Source: Hyaloraphidium curvatum SAG 235-1
Taxonomy: Eukaryota; Fungi; Monoblepharomycota
Length of the DNA: 64,000 nucleotides
Direction of reading: 5' to 3'
Assembly (NCBI GenBank): GCA_025558095.1
Contig: JAIVFI010000032.1
Span: forward strand, 434,001 to 498,000
The notes under the pieces were generated by a model, which was not told the origin of the DNA, did not search any database, and saw only the letters and a list, made by a program, of their open reading frames with translations. Position 1 is the first letter of the stretch. The number at the start of each line of letters is the position of its first letter. Positions 48,752-61,700 of the stretch are shown here, in pieces. A program made the position numbers and the translations under genes.

Positions 48752-49465
48752 TCACCGCCGTTTGGCAACACCTCGCCCGCATGGTGCGGGCCGCGTTGGG
48801 GATTGGAAGGCTGCGTCGCGCCGTCGTCTCGGCGAACCGTGTATGTCGCATGGGACATGAAATATCTATCGCTTTGGGACCACCGTGAGGGAGTAGTGGT
48901 CCCCAATATCCCGGCGTGTCCGATGGCGGATGGGGGTGGGTTGGGGATTGGCGGTGGGGGTGGCCGTACGAGCGAGTGAGCGGCCGGCCGGTGGCGAAAG
49001 CCCGCAGGTTCGGAAGGCGGTCGCGGGTCCGAGGGCAGGAGATCGCGGGCGCAGCACTCGGTCCAGGGGAGCTTTTGTCCGATCCGGGATGCAGCCTGTG
49101 CGGCACGGGCCCGGGATCGGTTCGTTGGGATAGTGGGTGCCACTGGGTGCTGGGTCTAACCATGGGGGACGGACCGGGCAGTCCCGGCCGTGTCCCGACC
49201 GGAACCGTGCCGTTCAAACGACGGATATGATCGCAGGCGATGCCAGCCCTTGCTTTGGGGACCCGAGCCCGGCTGTGGGCACGACGAAGCTTCCGAATTC
49301 CTTCCCAAAGCGGGAAAAATGGACCCGGCCGCGCACAAAAGCCGGCTGGACCGACCCCCCCCTTCCGCTCCGCGAAAAACCCGGCATCCCCCCGCACCAC
49401 CGAGGCCCCGTAGCCGCGCAGAACAGCACCGCCCGTCTCCGCTTCAAGCCGAGCAAGCAAGCCAG

Positions 49466-51508
49466 ATGGTCCGCAACGCCACGCTCGCCGCCCTCGCAGT
49501 GGCGTCGGCCCTCGCCGCGCTGGTTTCAGGCATCGACGCCACCCCCATCATCTTCGAGCGCCAGGTCTGCCGCCCTCCGCCACTGCCTTCCCGTGATGGA
49601 CATCGCCTGACCCGTCCCTTCCCGCTCCTCCCCTCCCGCGATGCCTCGCCCAGGCGGCCGACCCCGCCTGCGTCGCCCCGCAGGGCGCCGCGCCCGTGCA
49701 GATGGCCAAGCTCTGGACCTGCATGCAGCACGGCACCGGCGCCGCTTCCTACATCGCCGTCTCGACGACCCCCGGCGGTAACCCGGCGTGCCTGAGCAGG
49801 GACGCGAGGAACTGCATCTGGACCTCGGACGAGTGCTGCAAGGGCCTGGTCAACACCGCGGGATCCACGGCTCCTTTCCTCGAGTGAGTGTGGATGAGCG
49901 AGCCTGCGCTCTCTCGTGCGGATGGTGGATGGGCCCGCTGCGTCCGGCGTTGCCTGCCTTGTCTCGATTCGTTGATCAACCGCTGATCACCTCCCCTTCC
50001 GCCCTTCCGCAGGTGCGGCCCTCCCCACGCCGCCATTTGGGGCGACTCCGGCATGGTCGATCCGGAGGGATGGTGCATGAAGGCCATGGACATGCTCGGC
50101 GACGAGGACCTCGGCGAGGCCAGCCGCGGCCGCGTGTTCATCAGCGACAACGAGACCGCCACCGTGCACGTCGTCAGCCTTGACGGGTCCTCCAGCAGCG
50201 AGAGGGCTTCCTTCGTCAGGTCCATCCCGGTGGGATACAAAGGCGCGTCGGTGCAGGCCAACGCGGACGGCAGGTTCGCCTTCCTGGCGCACTACGCAAA
50301 CGGAAGCAGTGGGTGCTCACCGACGGGCCTGGCTTTTGCTCGTTACCGACTTTTCGTCACTGCTATTCAGTCGAGGTCATCGACTCCGGGCTTTACCTCG
50401 AGGCGCACGACGATCATTTCCACCTCGAAGACGCCGGCGCTTCCCTTCACCCGTTCGCCATGCGCGGTACCAGGCCCACCCACATCAACGTCCATGATGG
50501 TCTCGGTGAGTTGATGCATTCGATCAGGCGCTAGTGATGCCAACGCGCCTCGATGCAGTTGTATACTTCTTCGACGGGGACGCCTCCACCAATGCCACGG
50601 TCGCCTACTACAATGCCTCGGACCTCGAGGCCAAGAACGCGACCATCACCCCGCGGACCTTCGTCGCCGCCGTCGGGCACCACGGCACTGCCGTGCCGCA
50701 CCAGGGCTACTTCGTCGTTTCGACCTCGCGCAAGAACGGCACCACGGGTTCCCCGGTCGCATCGGGCGTCACCGTCAGGCCCATCTCCGATCCCACCAGG
50801 GTGATCTACGAGGCCGACAACTGGTCAGTAAGCCCAGTTGCGGTTGCCGCGATAGACGCGGCGCTGACGTGGTTGGAACGCAGCACCTCCCTGCACGGAG
50901 AAGCCACCGCCGGCACGCACATCGTCTTCGGCTGCATCGAGGGCCTCCTGGACGTCGATATCGTCAACGGAACCGTCACTCACAAGCTCGTCCCCTACCC
51001 GGCCAACTCCACTGGGCGTGTCGGCACCCTCAAGTCCCACCACGACCTGGACTTGACCGTGGCCGTGCAGGGCAACTCAGTTGTGGGTCTCTTTCGGACA
51101 CTTTTGGCCAGCGGGCAGCTGACTTTCCTTTGATTCAAGCTCTCGTACAACACCACCAGCGGCACCCTCCTCAGCAAAGGCCTTCCCGGCGGCACCAGGC
51201 CCTATCGCTTCGACATCTCGGCCGACAAGAGCTTCGTGGTCCTCGACGCCAACGGTACCCTCCACCAGCTCGACCCCGTGACCCTGGATCCGATCGCCGG
51301 GAAGCAGGCCATCCGCACCATCGGCGACGAGGCCAAGGGCATGCTCGCCGTCGGCGGCGACAGGGCCGTGGTCACCAAGGCCGGCGAAAGCACGGTGCAG
51401 GTCGTCGACCTCGAAGGCAACAGGATTAGGGGCAACGTGACCATCCCCGGAAAGCCCTACGCGATGGCGGTGGCCGGCGTGGTTTCCGCGGAGCCTCACG
51501 ACCATTGA
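49466..51508 (+). CDS. Secreted AztD-like zinc-binding beta-propeller fused to an N-terminal Cys-rich module; 6 introns
   Basis: Spliced product: IDSGLYLEAHDDHFH, RPTHINVHDG, FFDGD, GHHGTAVP, CTSLHGEA, FGCIEGLL; ends EPHDH. Confidence 0.75.
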
Positions 51509-51713
51509 AGGATTTAGAGCGAGGCTGCGAGGCTGCAGCGCAGACATTGGGGCTTAGAAAAGCGAAAGTTGGTGACGGGGTTTGTTTTTCGAACGCGGAG
51601 GCATGCATCTCCTTTGCTGCTGCAGAGCCATTTTTCTATAGAAGACGCGAGAGGAGCGTGCGTCAGCTCTCCTCTTCCTCACAGCGATTGACTCTCACGA
51701 GATTGCCTGTTCA

Positions 51714-52586
51714 TCACTTGTCCGCCTCCTTCAGCAAACGCTCCACATCCTCCTCCTTGCACAAGCCATCCAGGAACAGCGTCCATTGCGCGACCATCTG
51801 CGGGTAGTACATGTCCGTCCCCGGGATGTGCAGGATCCCGTTGGCATCGCAACGTTCGCGCAGCACGGCGCCGGGCATCTCGTGGTCGAACGCCGCGCGG
51901 GCGCCCGACAGCGCGGGGAGGAAGTGGGGCACCGTGTCTAGGGCTGCGTCGCCGATGGGCGCCGCGTTGACGAACAGGTCCGCTTGCGCACCGTCGGGGA
52001 ACGGTTCGGCGCCCAGCTTGGACGCAGCCTCCCTTGCTGCATCCGGCCGCCGCCCCGTAATAAAAACCTTCAACCCCATCGTCTTCAGCACGTGGACAAC
52101 GGCGGGCGTCACGCCCCCATAGCCGTAAACCACGGCTGACCGCGCCTCGATTCCCGCCTTTGCCAGACCGTCCCGCACCGCGATCTGGAACCCCAACGCG
52201 TCCGTATTGTACCCCTTCAGATTCAAGGTGCCGCGTTCCCTGACCACCGTGTTGACGGACCCCACTGCCCGCGCGAGGGGGTCCAGCGAGTCCAAGAACG
52301 GCACCACGGCGGCCTTGATGTCCCGAGATATCGCGCCGCCCACGGAATCGAGACCGCGGAGGGCCCAGACAAACCGTTGCGGGGAGATTTTGCCGCCGGG
52401 TTCGTCGCTGGAGATGGGGAGATACGCGATGTCGGCGCCGAGTAGTTCTTGAAGCAGTTTGTTGTACCGCCGCACGGAGGAGGGGCGCCCCGAGGTGGAG
52501 ACGATCAGGCGGGTAGAGGCGGTGATCCGGACCCCGGTGGACGCGTCCTGGCTCGCTAGAGGGGCGGCTGCCGGGTGGGGAGACAT
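51714..52586 (-). CDS. Stand-alone shikimate/quinate dehydrogenase-like protein (AroE family), intronless
   Basis: LDSLDPLARAVGSVNTVV, GYNTDALGF, VYGYGGV, LFVNAAPIG, PGTDMYYPQ. Confidence 0.85.
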   Translation of the reverse strand: MSPHPAAAPLASQDASTGVRITASTRLIVSTSGRPSSVRRYNKLLQELLGADIAYLPISSDEPGGKISPQRFVWALRGLDSVGGAISRDIKAAVVPFLDSLDPLARAVGSVNTVVRERGTLNLKGYNTDALGFQIAVRDGLAKAGIEARSAVVYGYGGVTPAVVHVLKTMGLKVFITGRRPDAAREAASKLGAEPFPDGAQADLFVNAAPIGDAALDTVPHFLPALSGARAAFDHEMPGAVLRERCDANGILHIPGTDMYYPQMVAQWTLFLDGLCKEEDVERLLKEADK

Positions 52587-57103: not shown

Positions 57104-59465
57104 TCACGCGCACGCCGCCTCCCTCGACGCCACCCATATCCCCGACGACGCCACGTTGGTCCTCCCGCACGAGTCCACCGCCCTCGCCTCGACAAAGTAG
57201 TACCCGCACCCCGCCGGCAGCGCGGGCAGGCGGAACGACGCCGCGTTGCGGTTGCGCGCCGAGGTGACGGCCACGGGGGCGCCGCACGACGCGGCGGTGC
57301 ACGAGACGCGGAAGAGGGAGAGGGTGATGGAGGTGGCGGGGAGGGCGGCGCCGCGGACGTCGCGGGCGGTGGCGGAGAGGGAGAGGGTGCGGCCGGGTTC
57401 GGAGGAGGCGGGCGGGGGGGAGAGGGAGAGGGTGGGGAGGTAGGGCGATTTGGGGCCGCTGGGGAAAAGGAGGGGGGGGGGGAATGCAGTCAGCGTCCGG
57501 CGATGCAATGAAAGAGGCAGGGGATGCTTACCAGGCGAGGACGGGGTCGATCCACTGCCCGTAGTTGAGCCCGGCGCCCGTGAGCGCGGTGCGCAGCTCG
57601 AGCCGCCGCACGCCGACGAGATTGACGTCCACGGCGGCGGCGGCCATCGCGCGCGACCGCGGGGTCGATGCGAACACGCGGCGCCCGTCGGCCCAGACCG
57701 AGAACACGACGCGGGCCGAGGCGGCCGAGGCGGCGTCCAGGCCGTACGCGACCCGGAGGCTGCCGCACATGCCGTCCAGCCGCACGGCGACGGTGCTCGC
57801 GCCCCTGACGCCGAACCCGCGCGCGTACCTGCGCCCGCCGACCCGCATGGGGCGCACCCGGCCCCGCACGGCGCCGATGCGCCCGTTGCGCGCGCACGGC
57901 CAGCCCATGGCGGTGGCGCAGGTCCAGGCGGGGGAGGAGGAGGGCGCCTGCGAGAGCTCGGAGAAGGCGCCCGAGAGGGGGGGGACGGTGCCGCGGGTGG
58001 TGATGAGGCAGGGGTCGGCCGGGGGCGGGGGCGGCGGCGGGGCGGCCGTGGTGGTGGCGGTGCGGGTCTGCGTCCGCGTCTGCGTGGTCGTCGCCGTTTG
58101 GGTGGCCGTGTAGGTCGTCGTTGTGGTGGTGAGCGTCGTGGTTGTGGTCGCGGGGTTGCGGAAGGCGGCCACGACGTGCGGGTGCATGTTGAGCGTGCGC
58201 GCATTGTCTGCCGAGTTGGCCGCGCCGCTGTCCACCCCCGTGCGCTCGTTCAGCCCGTTGGCGGTGTAGCTCACGTCCGGGTTGGAAAAGTACATGACGC
58301 GCGGGCACTCGCCGGGCTGCGAGTCGGGGCACTGGTACGCCATCACGGTGCGGAAGAGCTTCTGCGGGTGCTGGTAGCCGTAGCTGTACGGGTACACGCC
58401 CGGGCCGCCGGCGTTGGCGCGGTCGTGGTGCGCGCCCATGTTGTGCCCGAGCTCGTGGCCGAACGAGTAGACGCCCGCCGCGCACGCGTGCGAGACGACC
58501 GAGTAGCCGTTGTCGGCAAAGTCGACCGAGGGCTCCTGCATCTGCCAGCCCACGCCGCAGCTCGTGGTGAGGGAGGTGAGCAGCACGACGAGGTCGGCGG
58601 CGTACTGGTCGCGCAGCGCGCGCACCGTGCCGGGCGTGTCTTGGGTGATGGCGCCGAGCAGCTGCACGAAGCTCTGCTCCTGCACGTCCAGCTCCTCGGC
58701 GTGCACGAGGCGGATGCGCTGCACGATGCCGCTGTTGCGGTAGGCCTCGTTGGTCTCGTCCGTGGCGGTCTGCGCGATGGCGCGGATCTGCGCCTCGCCG
58801 CCCTGCGCGGCCCGCGCGCCCGGGGTCCACAGCACCATCACGTCAATGATCGGGTCGCCGCCCTGGCGCTTGGCCAGCTCGACGAGCTCGGCGGTGCGCT
58901 TGGCCAGGCGGCGGCGCTCCTCGGGCGCCTTCTGCGGCGGCACCAGGGGCTGCATGCCCTCGGGCACGCGCGACTCGTCCAGCTCCGACACGCGGTGCAG
59001 CCGGCCCGACACGGGGGTGATGGCGTACACCTTGTGCGAGGTGCGCACGGTGCCGGCGACCAGGCCGCCGGTGACGGAGAGCACGACGGCCGAGAGCGGG
59101 TCGTCCTTCACGGCGCCGAACCAGGTGAAGCGGTCCGCGGCGACCTCCTCCACGCGATCGCGCACGGCGACCAGCGGGGTGCCGAAGAGCGGCAGCAGCA
59201 GCTCGGGCGGGCCGTAGGCGGCGATGGCGGGCAGGTCGACGAGGGCGAGCAGGCTCCGGTTGGCGAACGGGTCCGCGGCGGGGTTGGCGTCGGCGGCCAT
59301 GCCCCACCGCGGGAAGGTGAGGAACGACGCGGCGCGCTGCGCGAGCGGGGCGGCGGCCGCCGGGGCCGCCGCGATCGCCAGCAGCGCGAGCAGCGCGGCG
59401 CCGGCCACGCGGGCGGTGCTGACGGGGGCGGCGCGGGAGAGCGTCCGCCGCGGGCCGCCGGCCAT
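57104..59465 (-). CDS. Secreted metzincin (M12/reprolysin-like) zinc metallopeptidase + Thr/Pro linker + NPCBM/NEW2 domain + C-terminal beta-sandwich; 1 intron
   Basis: IDVMVLWT, LRDQYAADLVVLL, HELGHNMGAHHD, FRTVMAY (Met-turn), YFSNP; NPCBM-type MRVGGRRYARGFGV...VVFSVWADG...VDVNLVGVRRLEL...WIDP. Confidence 0.88.
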
Positions 59466-61700
59466 CCGGGCGGCGTGCGGCATGTCGCGCGAGTCCGCCG
59501 GCGCGGCGGCCGGCCGCGATTGGCGCGGGGAGGCCGGAGGGGCCGCGGTGCGGCGCGCGCGGGCGGGCCCGGCGCCCGGGCCGCGGACCGCAACGCTGCG
59601 GCCCTCCGCGGCCGGGCTGTCCATGGGAACGGGGTAGGAACGGCGGGTATGGCTGTCCATGGTGGTATGAGGTGGTGCGCCGGTTTGCGGCAGCCCCCGG
59701 GCCTTTCAAGGACATGGCCACAGCGCCCCAGCCTATTCGAGGGTCGTGACCTCAGAGTTAGGGACACCCCCCCTGCCTTCCCGTGCGTCCCCTGCCCCTC
59801 CCAGACCCCACGAAGCTCTGCATGTTGCTCCTCCGGGCGATAACGGCCACATGGCGGCCCTCCCACGGGCCCCCGCCGGCTCCCATAAGCTTCGCGTCCC
59901 GAGCCCCATGGGGCTGGTGACCGCCTCAAGCCGCAGATGACCAATCCCACCTTGCCCCCGGGGCCCCGACATCCCGACAGGGCGCACCAGCCTCCCGACC
60001 GGCCCGCCGGAGTCGCCCACCGCCGCCTCCCCCGCCTCTCCACCCGCTCCATGCCTCGTGCCCGGTGGCCGGGCAGCGCTGGCTGTCCCGATCGAGGCCG
60101 GGTCGTGCTCCGCTGCCGTAAGCAGGGCATTTTCGGGGATCGGCGCTTTGGCGGTGCGCGGGCCGGTCGGGGCGGCGAGGCGGGCGTGGCACCCCGGAAC
60201 CCCGCCACCGGGATGTGGCGCGGCGCACCGGGTCGGAGGCGCCGGGGGGGGGGAGGAGCTCGGGCGGGGTCCGCGGTGGCAAACACAGCCGCCTTGCCGC
60301 ACAACGCACAGCAATCAGGGGGTGCGGCATCGCCTTGGGGGGGCAGAGAGGTGCGTGCCAGGGGCGGATCGGGCGCCGGGGCGTACCTGACGACGGAGGT
60401 CGGGGGAGCAGGTGGGCGCGGCATGCATTCGGGCCCTGCGATGGGCGTGTCGGGGATCGTCCGCCTGGGTGTGTAACCATCGCAGGCAGCTGGGCGCCGT
60501 CGGCCCATCCGCGGAAAAGGTTGGCGGGCCGGACGCAAAGCGCATTGGAAGCAGACATGACGCCGTCCGGTATCTTAGGGGCAGGACAGGGTCCGGCGCA
60601 GAGGACCGACTCGGCCCCATGCCCGCGCCCTGTCCGATCCGGAGTGCCGTACCACCACCGCCCGCCAACGCACTGCCGTCCCGCCCGAACAAGCCGGCCG
60701 CGAACTATTCCGCCGCAGTCCTTCGCGAACTTCGGCCTCGGCGGGCGCAGGCCCCGGAACCTGGCGTGTCCGGACGCCTCCGGTCGCGGGCAGTCAGGAC
60801 AGAATCTTGCCCGGGGCGGCATTTACAAGCCCAGAACGAAGATACGTATCGACCGGGGCGATCGTGGGGGAGCCGGGAGCGCGCCAGGGGAAAGTGGTGC
60901 CTTTCCTGCTTGCCGGGGAGCGCCGGCTGCACGACGAGGACTTTGGCGCAACCTGGACGCCCGCTGCAGAGTCGGGTGTGGCAAGGTGGACTTCGGGGTT
61001 GTCCGCACTGCCGCAGAAGCGACGGGGGCCGGACGGGTCGGGCCGACCGTTTTTCGGACAGGCGGCCGGGGATCCGAAAGACTACCGAGGGAGCGGGGAA
61101 GGCCCCGGGTCCCCGGGGGACCGCGAGGGCGGTGCGCCACAGTAGAGGACGCGGGGTTGACGGGAAACCGGCAGGAAAGAAAGCCCATCGCCTTTTTGCG
61201 TCGGTCTTTACATTCGCGTCGCCCGAAACCGGGCCAGCTGAGTCCGCCGCCGGCCTCGTGCCGAACAGCGGGGTTTCCCCATCGGTCGGCGCCAAGGAGG
61301 GAAGGAGGGGGCGTTGCGTCGGCGATCCCGCCGCGGGCCGCCCCCACGCGGCGCGATCGCGCCCCCCGCGCCCCGCGGCGCATCCCGACCCCCGCGGCCC
61401 CGCAGATCCGCCTTCGTCGCCGCCGAACGGCCCGCGATGTTGTCGGCGGCCGCGATGGATTGCCGGCCACCAGCCCGTCAGCGTGCAAGGCCACCGAGTT
61501 TCGCCGGTGCACGACCACCCCGGGGATTTGATCGAGCACCAGCCCGGCACCCGCCCGCGGCGGGACAACGGAGTTCCGGCTGCCGACGCCGCGCGGCCGC
61601 ACGCGCAACGCCCCGCATAAAGCGTCAACGACAAGGCATCGCCGCCGGCCACCGCTCCCAGCCCCCACGACCGGTTTCCGAACGCGATTCGCCCGTGAAG

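Follow-up and report, generated by a model that had tools for sequence, protein, structure and literature searches.

We analysed a 64,000-nt window from the fungus Hyaloraphidium curvatum SAG 235-1 (contig JAIVFI010000032.1, positions 434,001 to 498,000 of the forward strand; coordinates below are those of the window), in which a seven-exon gene on the + strand, at 49466-51508 with the stop included, probably encodes a secreted protein that captures extracellular zinc and that combines an AztD-type beta-propeller from a bacterium with a grafted Cys-rich module resembling the ectodomain of the poxvirus protein H2. All descriptions of AztD so far are of a periplasmic or lipoprotein zinc chaperone in bacteria, serving an ABC transporter, and the traits of its family are Zn(II) binding in the nanomolar range and transfer of an associative type (PMC6689063). 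The kinship of the fungal propeller to AztD is well supported by sequence, ligands, disulfide, and fold. The extracellular zinc-scavenging (zincophore) role is likely but unproven, and is inferred from the ligand set and from the attachments of the family elsewhere.

The seven exons encode 530 aa, and a script comparison of the concatenated exons gave an exact match to the GenBank protein KAI9008693.1 (P0001; "hypothetical protein DFJ74DRAFT_711787", Hyaloraphidium curvatum, on a 571,848-bp contig). Searches with the spliced model were run one exon at a time, and the database entry was used for full-length searches; an exhaustive protein search with the exon 5-6 block recovered the same 530-aa entry with 99% identity. 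The order within the protein is a predicted signal peptide, the Cys-rich module (residues ~36-135), a short acidic linker, and the propeller (residues ~148-526). A hydrophobic core is present near the start of the protein (mean Kyte-Doolittle value 2.1, residues 5-21), the mature part contains 12 N-glycosylation sequons, and no dibasic processing site was found after the module. Reading the module as a pro-domain that is removed at a Kex2 site is accordingly unsupported.

When the whole protein was compared with the NCBIfam model of AztD, NF038015, it matched with 111.4 bits (E 3.9e-32) over residues 189-521, and the exon translations were collinear on the model, occupying profile positions 45-84, 88-147, 166-219, and 269-355. 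Bacterial relatives scored in a like range (104 bits for P0004 and 142 bits for P0007), and by sequence the propeller can be placed as a distant member of the wider AztD family. Sequence searches with the exons found both solved AztDs, PdAztD (6CK1) and CkAztD (6CMK). An AlphaFold model of the propeller was built on 18 relatives, the propeller and the module being folded separately, and its predicted local distance difference test score (pLDDT) exceeded 90 over most of residues 150-526. Foldseek comparison of this model with the PDB revealed that the best nine matches were all AztD chains, with E-values of 4.5e-25 to 2.8e-23, template modelling (TM) scores of 0.85-0.88 (by target), and a root-mean-square deviation (rmsd) of 2.7-3.2 A. 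The next matches were generic propellers at ~3e-10, leaving a gap of ~15 orders of magnitude. Taken together, the hidden Markov model hit at E 3.9e-32 and the Foldseek hits at E ~1e-25 indicate a match far beyond chance, at 21-24% identity to the characterised AztDs, and the predicted structure is that of an eight-bladed AztD-type beta-propeller. The sequence-only reading had recognised AztD from a series of motifs, which lie at residues 221-226 (HDDHFH), 244-246 (PTH), 294-296 (HHG), and 342-349 (C..LHGEA), at Cys359 (FGC), and in the C-terminal HDH; the profile, the two solved structures, the ligands, and the disulfide all bore this out, as did the structural comparison.

In PdAztD, zinc site 1 consists of His124, His167, and His218, and site 2 of His99, His102, and Asp104 together with the C-terminal His408, and the conserved disulfide joins Cys214 and Cys231; the transfer site lies on an extension made by the N- and C-terminal strands (PMC6689063). 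In the fungal protein, the aligned positions of site 1 are His246, His295, and His346, in columns nearly invariant across an 18-sequence alignment. For site 2, an ungapped alignment placed His99 and His102 on His221 and His224, Asp104 was replaced by His226, and His408 corresponded to the terminal His530. The disulfide cysteines corresponded to Cys342 and Cys359, which are invariant columns in the 18-sequence alignment A1. Thus, six of the seven published ligands were kept along with the disulfide, all seven positions hold metal-binding residues, and the His clusters noticed from the letters alone do align with the zinc sites of AztD. The resulting HxxHxH variant was also present in six bacterial relatives, namely P0007, which is the closest, and P0017, P0008, P0012, P0004, and P0006.

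The surrounding window is eukaryotic DNA with a GC content of 66%, and all the motifs quoted in the sequence-only reading were found in place. The exon borders were first read from the sequence and then checked independently against a contig of run X1, which was the only public run containing the locus stretch. One contig of this run matched the seven exon blocks with 0 mismatches and skipped six GT..AG introns. Because such skipping is impossible from DNA, run X1 holds RNA, indicating that the gene is expressed and spliced; because a single contig spans all the exons, the signal peptide, the Cys module, and the propeller are on one transcript. The six introns proposed earlier and the stated coordinates of the gene were therefore confirmed, with one correction, as exon 6 really ends at 51082 (donor GTGGGT). 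That the module and the propeller might belong to separate transcripts, which the earlier reading had named as a finding that would overturn it, is ruled out by the same contig.

These data also bear on the suspicion of bacterial contamination or an annotation artefact, which could arise from the bacterial nature of the nearest relatives. We consider it extremely improbable, since six spliceosomal introns are removed in RNA, the gene is flanked by intron-bearing eukaryotic genes on a contig of 572 kb, and its GC content at third codon positions (GC3) is host-like (0.889, compared with 0.828 in the neighbouring gene). In addition, the propeller is fused to a module that is present on many contigs of the genome. 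The spliced transcript contig, with its six introns removed, refutes this explanation.

The 31.9-Mb genome contains one copy of the propeller. In the exhaustive search of 1.84 billion representative proteins with the exon 5-6 block, only 16 proteins reached E 1e-3. Apart from H. curvatum, two eukaryotes were represented among them, Diplonema papillatum by a protein and Picocystis salinarum by a transcript product, and no further fungal relative was found among these representatives. The claim of absence rests on this search, as word-index searches say little on that point; the latter returned, for the whole protein, a single metagenome protein and a single Phreatobacter protein besides itself, and for the 18-sequence profile, three proteins. 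In a genome scan, the named relatives closest to it came from metagenome-assembled genomes (MAGs) of Myxococcota, with 26-33% identity, the nearest Atlas clusters to the propeller were all bacterial, and a metagenome scan with the propeller retrieved only two bacterial relatives, with 27% identity. In a sample of 251 Myxococcota genomes, the starting genome was the sole match, indicating that the family is thinly spread in that phylum.

A maximum-likelihood tree of 34 sequences was rooted on four canonical AztDs. The fungal protein grouped with two Myxococcota sequences, P0007 and P0016 (support 98/96), and this group nested in a nine-member clade (support 95/92) of which the rest were Myxococcota and metagenome sequences. 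The five Diplonema domains grouped with Pseudomonadota sequences, and Picocystis was placed separately. Forcing the eukaryotes together cost 86.6 log-likelihood units, with a p-value of 8e-5 in the approximately unbiased test (p-AU), so that a single eukaryotic clade is rejected. The locus shows the AztD family entering eukaryotes at least three times, in the fungus, in Diplonema, and in Picocystis. The relatives in three distant eukaryotes, the six introns, and the host composition would also be explained if the gene were of ancient eukaryotic origin, passed on by vertical descent and lost from nearly all lineages. However, the three eukaryotic lineages lie in three different bacterial neighbourhoods that can be joined only at the above cost, and no relative from another fungus appeared among the 1.84 billion proteins, so that vertical descent is very unlikely. 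Considering the nesting among Myxococcota, the host-like GC3, the six introns, and the 12 sequons, the gene is best explained by a bacterial transfer and a long stay in the fungus since then, and bacterial transfer with subsequent intron gain is well supported. The fungal gene thus stands among Myxococcota and apart from Diplonema and Picocystis, in agreement with the earlier proposal that a bacterial AztD had been acquired and had then gained introns and a signal peptide. The donor was most likely related to Myxococcota; as the identity is only ~30%, it cannot be named more closely.

The Cys-rich module occupies residues ~36-135, a length of ~100 aa instead of the ~85 aa estimated before, and contains eight Cys (39, 56, 79, 87, 94, 95, 111, and 131) that probably form four disulfides. 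The genome search revealed that the module recurs more than 30 times elsewhere, spread over many contigs; these copies have 27-51% identity and sit N-terminal, internal, or C-terminal in long open frames. In one paralog (L007:358-2181:-, contig C15), the module follows a signal peptide and precedes a beta-lactamase/DD-peptidase-type serine hydrolase domain (PF00144, E 1.5e-52), and no Pfam domain was found in the other module paralogs examined. Another paralog (L014) has an intron (GTGGGT...CTGAC...AG) at the exact place and phase of intron 2 of the gene studied here. From the more than 30 paralogs and the shared intron position, it follows that the module was taken from a pre-existing family and was not invented for the AztD-like gene. 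The idea of a special fusion partner was therefore not borne out, and no relative was found in oomycetes or other chytrids, although a likeness to their secreted repeats had been suggested. A word-index search with the module region returned itself only, an Atlas search gave no usable match by sequence features and nothing above TM 0.43 by shape, and a scan of viral contigs with the module found nothing by sequence.

Within the module family, a second and more distant Cys-rich type was observed directly upstream in tandem (L009:3005-3349:-, L008:1132-1482:+, L010:1176-1514:+, and L028:59-418:+), with the consensus C..SC.D.G.Y....C.G.D...C.W...C..L.P....CP...GWC. Moreover, the paralogs L023:416-775:- and L028:444-857:+ carry insertions or in-frame stops within the module. 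These interruptions look like further introns at other places in the module, which suggests that intron content varies in the module family.

The structural model of the module, built on 29 paralogs, was confident, with a pLDDT of 87 and a predicted TM score of 0.81. When it was searched against structure representatives with VIA-align, the H2 ectodomain ranked top, with Z-scores of 9.6, 8.5, and 8.0 to 8INI, 9L7W, and 9UZO, respectively. The superposition on vaccinia and mpox H2 covered 81 residues with an rmsd of 2.3-3.0 A, and the next entry had a Z-score of 3.3. Foldseek comparison of the module with H2 gave E 3.6e-3 and a probability of 1.0. In a library of viral models, the best matches were two unnamed proteins, proteins of Catovirus and Tupanvirus (23-27% and 19% identity), and after these poxvirus H2. 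A profile alignment placed the CC, ECG, GY, and WC of the module on Cys148, Cys162, LGYSG, and Trp181-Cys182 of H2, and these H2 residues are those of the H2 disulfide and the A28-binding elements (bioRxiv 10.1101/2023.08.28.555102). Like the H2 ectodomain (PF03356), the modelled module appears as a five-stranded sheet with three helices, stapled by disulfides, the closest superposition being at 2.3 A over 81 residues, and remote homology between the two is probable. The module differs from H2 in having four probable disulfides instead of two and in lacking the type II membrane anchor, and it is found in secreted fungal proteins, not in virions. The match thus points to a possible relative, among cellular proteins, of one component of the poxvirus entry machinery, the origin of which is obscure.

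For the zinc role, the attachments of the family in other organisms are informative. The Diplonema papillatum protein KAJ9458053.1 (P0002, 2432 aa) consists of five tandem AztD-like propellers and then a ZIP domain (PF02535, residues 2114-2422, E 5e-52). Its site-1 His residues are kept in repeats 1-4 and the site-2 motif in repeats 1 and 4, and repeat 5 has lost both. In an uncultured Caldilinea MAG (L036:5530-7734:+), a single 735-aa protein unites an AztD-like propeller with a ZnuA domain (PF01297, E 1.8e-88), a natural chaperone-acceptor fusion. One Myxococcales homologue adjoins a TonB-dependent receptor, and about half of the canonical AztD genes adjoin a ZnuA-type gene (PMC6689063). The Picocystis salinarum product (P0015, an EukProt/MMETSP transcript) combines an AztD-like propeller with a long tail rich in His and Asp and with a C-terminus that is hydrophobic.

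In the H. curvatum genome, ten ZIP matches, corresponding to ~eight genes, were found on contigs C2, C7, C8, C16, C17, C18, C25, and C26. As to the characterised fungal zincophores, neither the protein nor the genome matched the Pra1/Aspf2 family (PF13933), the genome search being one without a positive control; this agrees with the statement of the sequence-only reading that the protein does not belong to that family.

On the basis of these results, we propose the following sequence of events and mode of action. A bacterial propeller, most likely Myxococcota-related, would have been naturalised by acquiring six introns, host GC3, and many sequons, and a module from a pre-existing paralog would have been grafted onto it. 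The secreted protein would bind Zn(II) at two sites, capturing scarce extracellular zinc. The pore site would be formed by His246, His295, and His346, and the transfer site, on the extension made by the N- and C-terminal strands, by His221, His224, and His226 together with the C-terminal His530. Because no ZnuA/AztC-type binding protein is present in the genome, zinc would have to go to a different acceptor, for which one of the ~8 ZIP importers is the most plausible candidate. In the model, the transfer site is flanked by an N-terminal strand, and immediately ahead of that strand sits the module. Owing to this position, the module would be well placed to influence docking, and, being H2-like, it may serve to dock the protein, either on a surface partner or on the wall.

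Several observations weigh against this proposal. Concerning the propeller, the score of 111 bits is far below the 400-bit curated cut-off of NF038015, which is a narrow model, and the Asp104-to-His replacement is the sole departure from the published ligands. The tree comprises few sequences (34 rows), and it includes long branches (1.39 for Hyaloraphidium). The signal peptide and its cleavage are predicted from the hydrophobic core, and the pairing of the module cysteines is putative. The link to H2 depends on a predicted model; only one of the 29 module copies matched the Pfam family PF03356, at a non-significant E of 0.21, and the module profile compared with MPXV H2 gave E 1.1, also not significant. 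As regards zinc, no zinc or metal genes are near the gene of the closest bacterial relative (L033), and no ZIP gene was found on the fungal gene's own 572-kb contig (C32) or in the neighbouring open reading frames (ORFs). No ZRE-like or CAAGGT motif occurs within 1 kb upstream, where the relevant chytrid motif may differ. Finally, no ZnuA-type protein (PF01297) was matched in the whole genome, whereas the control search was positive in 11 of 14 genomes. With no such acceptor in the genome, the one mechanism that has been characterised for AztD cannot work here in its known form.

Some of these observations would suit a protein that binds zinc but does not serve uptake. It could be an extracellular buffer or sequestrant, withholding zinc from competing microbes or protecting against an excess, or it could load secreted zinc enzymes, for example the product of an ORF 6 kb away (57528-59660, - strand), an M12/reprolysin-type zinc metalloprotease with a C-terminal NPCBM domain and probably a secreted enzyme. 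The ligands are kept, yet no transporter is linked and no AztC-like acceptor is present; a secreted zinc protease of this type is nearby; and AztD is dispensable for growth of P. denitrificans in low zinc (PMC6689063). However, the family is fused to importers elsewhere, namely to ZIP in Diplonema and to ZnuA in Caldilinea, which points to delivery for uptake, and we regard a buffering or loading function as possible but rather unlikely. It is less likely still, in our judgement, that the propeller was repurposed for another metal (Ni, Cu, Co, or Mn) or for a non-metal ligand and has nothing to do with zinc. The identity of 21-24%, the score under the family cut-off, the missing zinc context of the nearest Myxococcota gene, and an all-His site 2 that could shift metal preference are consistent with such a change. 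But every ligand position and the disulfide are filled, and HxxHxH members (P0004 and repeats 1 and 4 of P0002) fall in the clade of the Diplonema ZIP-fusion domains.

Compared with the AztDs of P. denitrificans and Citrobacter koseri (6CK1, 6CMK, and 6N01), the fungal protein shares the fold, the site-1 triad, the equivalents of His99, His102, and the C-terminal His, the disulfide, and an extracytoplasmic location, which is here predicted. It differs from them in its low identity (21-24%), in its profile score (111 against 400 bits), in the Asp104-to-His replacement, and in having six introns, sequons, and an added Cys module, with neither an aztABC operon nor a ZnuA-type acceptor. The nearest relatives, the Myxococcota lipoproteins P0007 (MAG IP29b_bin.34) and P0016 (MEM9069927.1), reach 32-33% identity and are its sister group at 98/96. 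The HDDHFH motif of site 2 is shared by P0007 and is absent from P0016, and both are uncharacterised bacterial lipoproteins without a Cys module or introns. Pra1/Aspf2 (PF13933, HRXXH zincin-like) resembles the fungal protein in the proposed role, that is, secreted fungal zinc capture for a membrane importer. However, the fold and the family are unrelated, and there is no divergent ZIP neighbour as in PRA1-ZRT1 or aspf2-zrfC. The Diplonema protein, annotated as "Histidine-rich membrane protein KE4-like protein 1", likewise provides eukaryotic AztD-like propellers, but with five propellers and a ZIP, no Cys module, and a separate acquisition, as it groups with Pseudomonadota.

None of the eukaryotic forms can use the bacterial acceptor, one being secreted with a Cys module, one a five-fold ZIP fusion, and one provided with a His/Asp-rich tail. 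Together they constitute a natural experiment that bears on the ability of AztD-type propellers to supply ZIP transporters, and for a fungal lineage without a detected Pra1 homologue, the H. curvatum protein offers a concrete, testable candidate for how zinc is acquired. A more far-reaching version, which as a whole we hold to be unlikely, would be a Pra1-unrelated system in which the AztD propeller has been retargeted to ZIP, with the H2-like module as the dock and Diplonema as a parallel, and in which the module family is the first cellular counterpart of H2, exchanged between giant viruses and zoosporic fungi. If this were true, Diplonema would have reached the same propeller-ZIP coupling independently, by fusion.

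The arrangement of the gene on the + strand, as read from the transcript contig, is as follows. The 5' untranslated region (UTR) is at 49380-49465, with the contig starting at 49380 and sequencing adapter lying beyond. Exon 1 (49466-49564) contains the start codon and the predicted signal peptide with its hydrophobic core (residues 1-33). It is followed by intron 1 (49565-49653, 89 nt, GT..AG; contig joint 49560>49650, cut +4). Exon 2 (49654-49883) encodes, by translation, the first part of the H2-like module (residues 34-110, with Cys 39, 56, 79, 87, 94, and 95). Intron 2 (49884-50012, 129 nt, GTGAGT..AG, phase 2) lies within the module, at the position and phase shared with the L014 intron. 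Exon 3 (50013-50308) encodes the module end (Cys 111 and 131; to ~50088), the acidic linker, and, according to the model, the first propeller strands, so that the module-propeller junction is inside this exon; intron 3 (50309-50370) has 62 nt and the borders GTGGGT..AG.

Exon 4 (50371-50505) carries the HDDHFH of site 2 (His221, His224, and His226, 50406-50423) and His246 of site 1 (50481-50483), in an ungapped alignment to PdAztD 90-130, and is followed by intron 4 (50506-50558, 53 nt, GTGAGT..AG). Exon 5 (50559-50823) encodes the FFDG blade and, by alignment, His295 of site 1 (50681-50683). Intron 5 (50824-50883, 60 nt, GTCAGT..AG) is in frame and stop-free and splits the codon of the disulfide Cys342. 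Its retention would insert 20 residues and replace that codon, and the contig represents the spliced form only. Exon 6 (50884-51082), aligned to PdAztD 211-259, carries C..LHGEA with His346 of site 1 (50894-50896) and the disulfide residues Cys342 and Cys359 (50933-50935), and intron 6 (51083-51139) has 57 nt and the borders GTGGGT..AG. Exon 7 (51140-51508) encodes the last blades and the C-terminal HDH, in which His530 (51503-51505) aligns with His408 of PdAztD site 2, and ends with the stop codon at 51506-51508.

The 3' UTR (51509-51635) overlaps the 3' end of the transcript of a convergent neighbour, as the contig runs to 51635 and then into a minus-strand gene. The contig also skips 51636-51698 (63 nt), a segment with GT..AG borders on the - strand and hence an intron, in the 3' region of a convergent shikimate-dehydrogenase-like gene (ORF 51714-52586). 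Because the 3' ends of the two convergent genes overlap, the assembler merged both transcripts in one contig of 3,137 nt.

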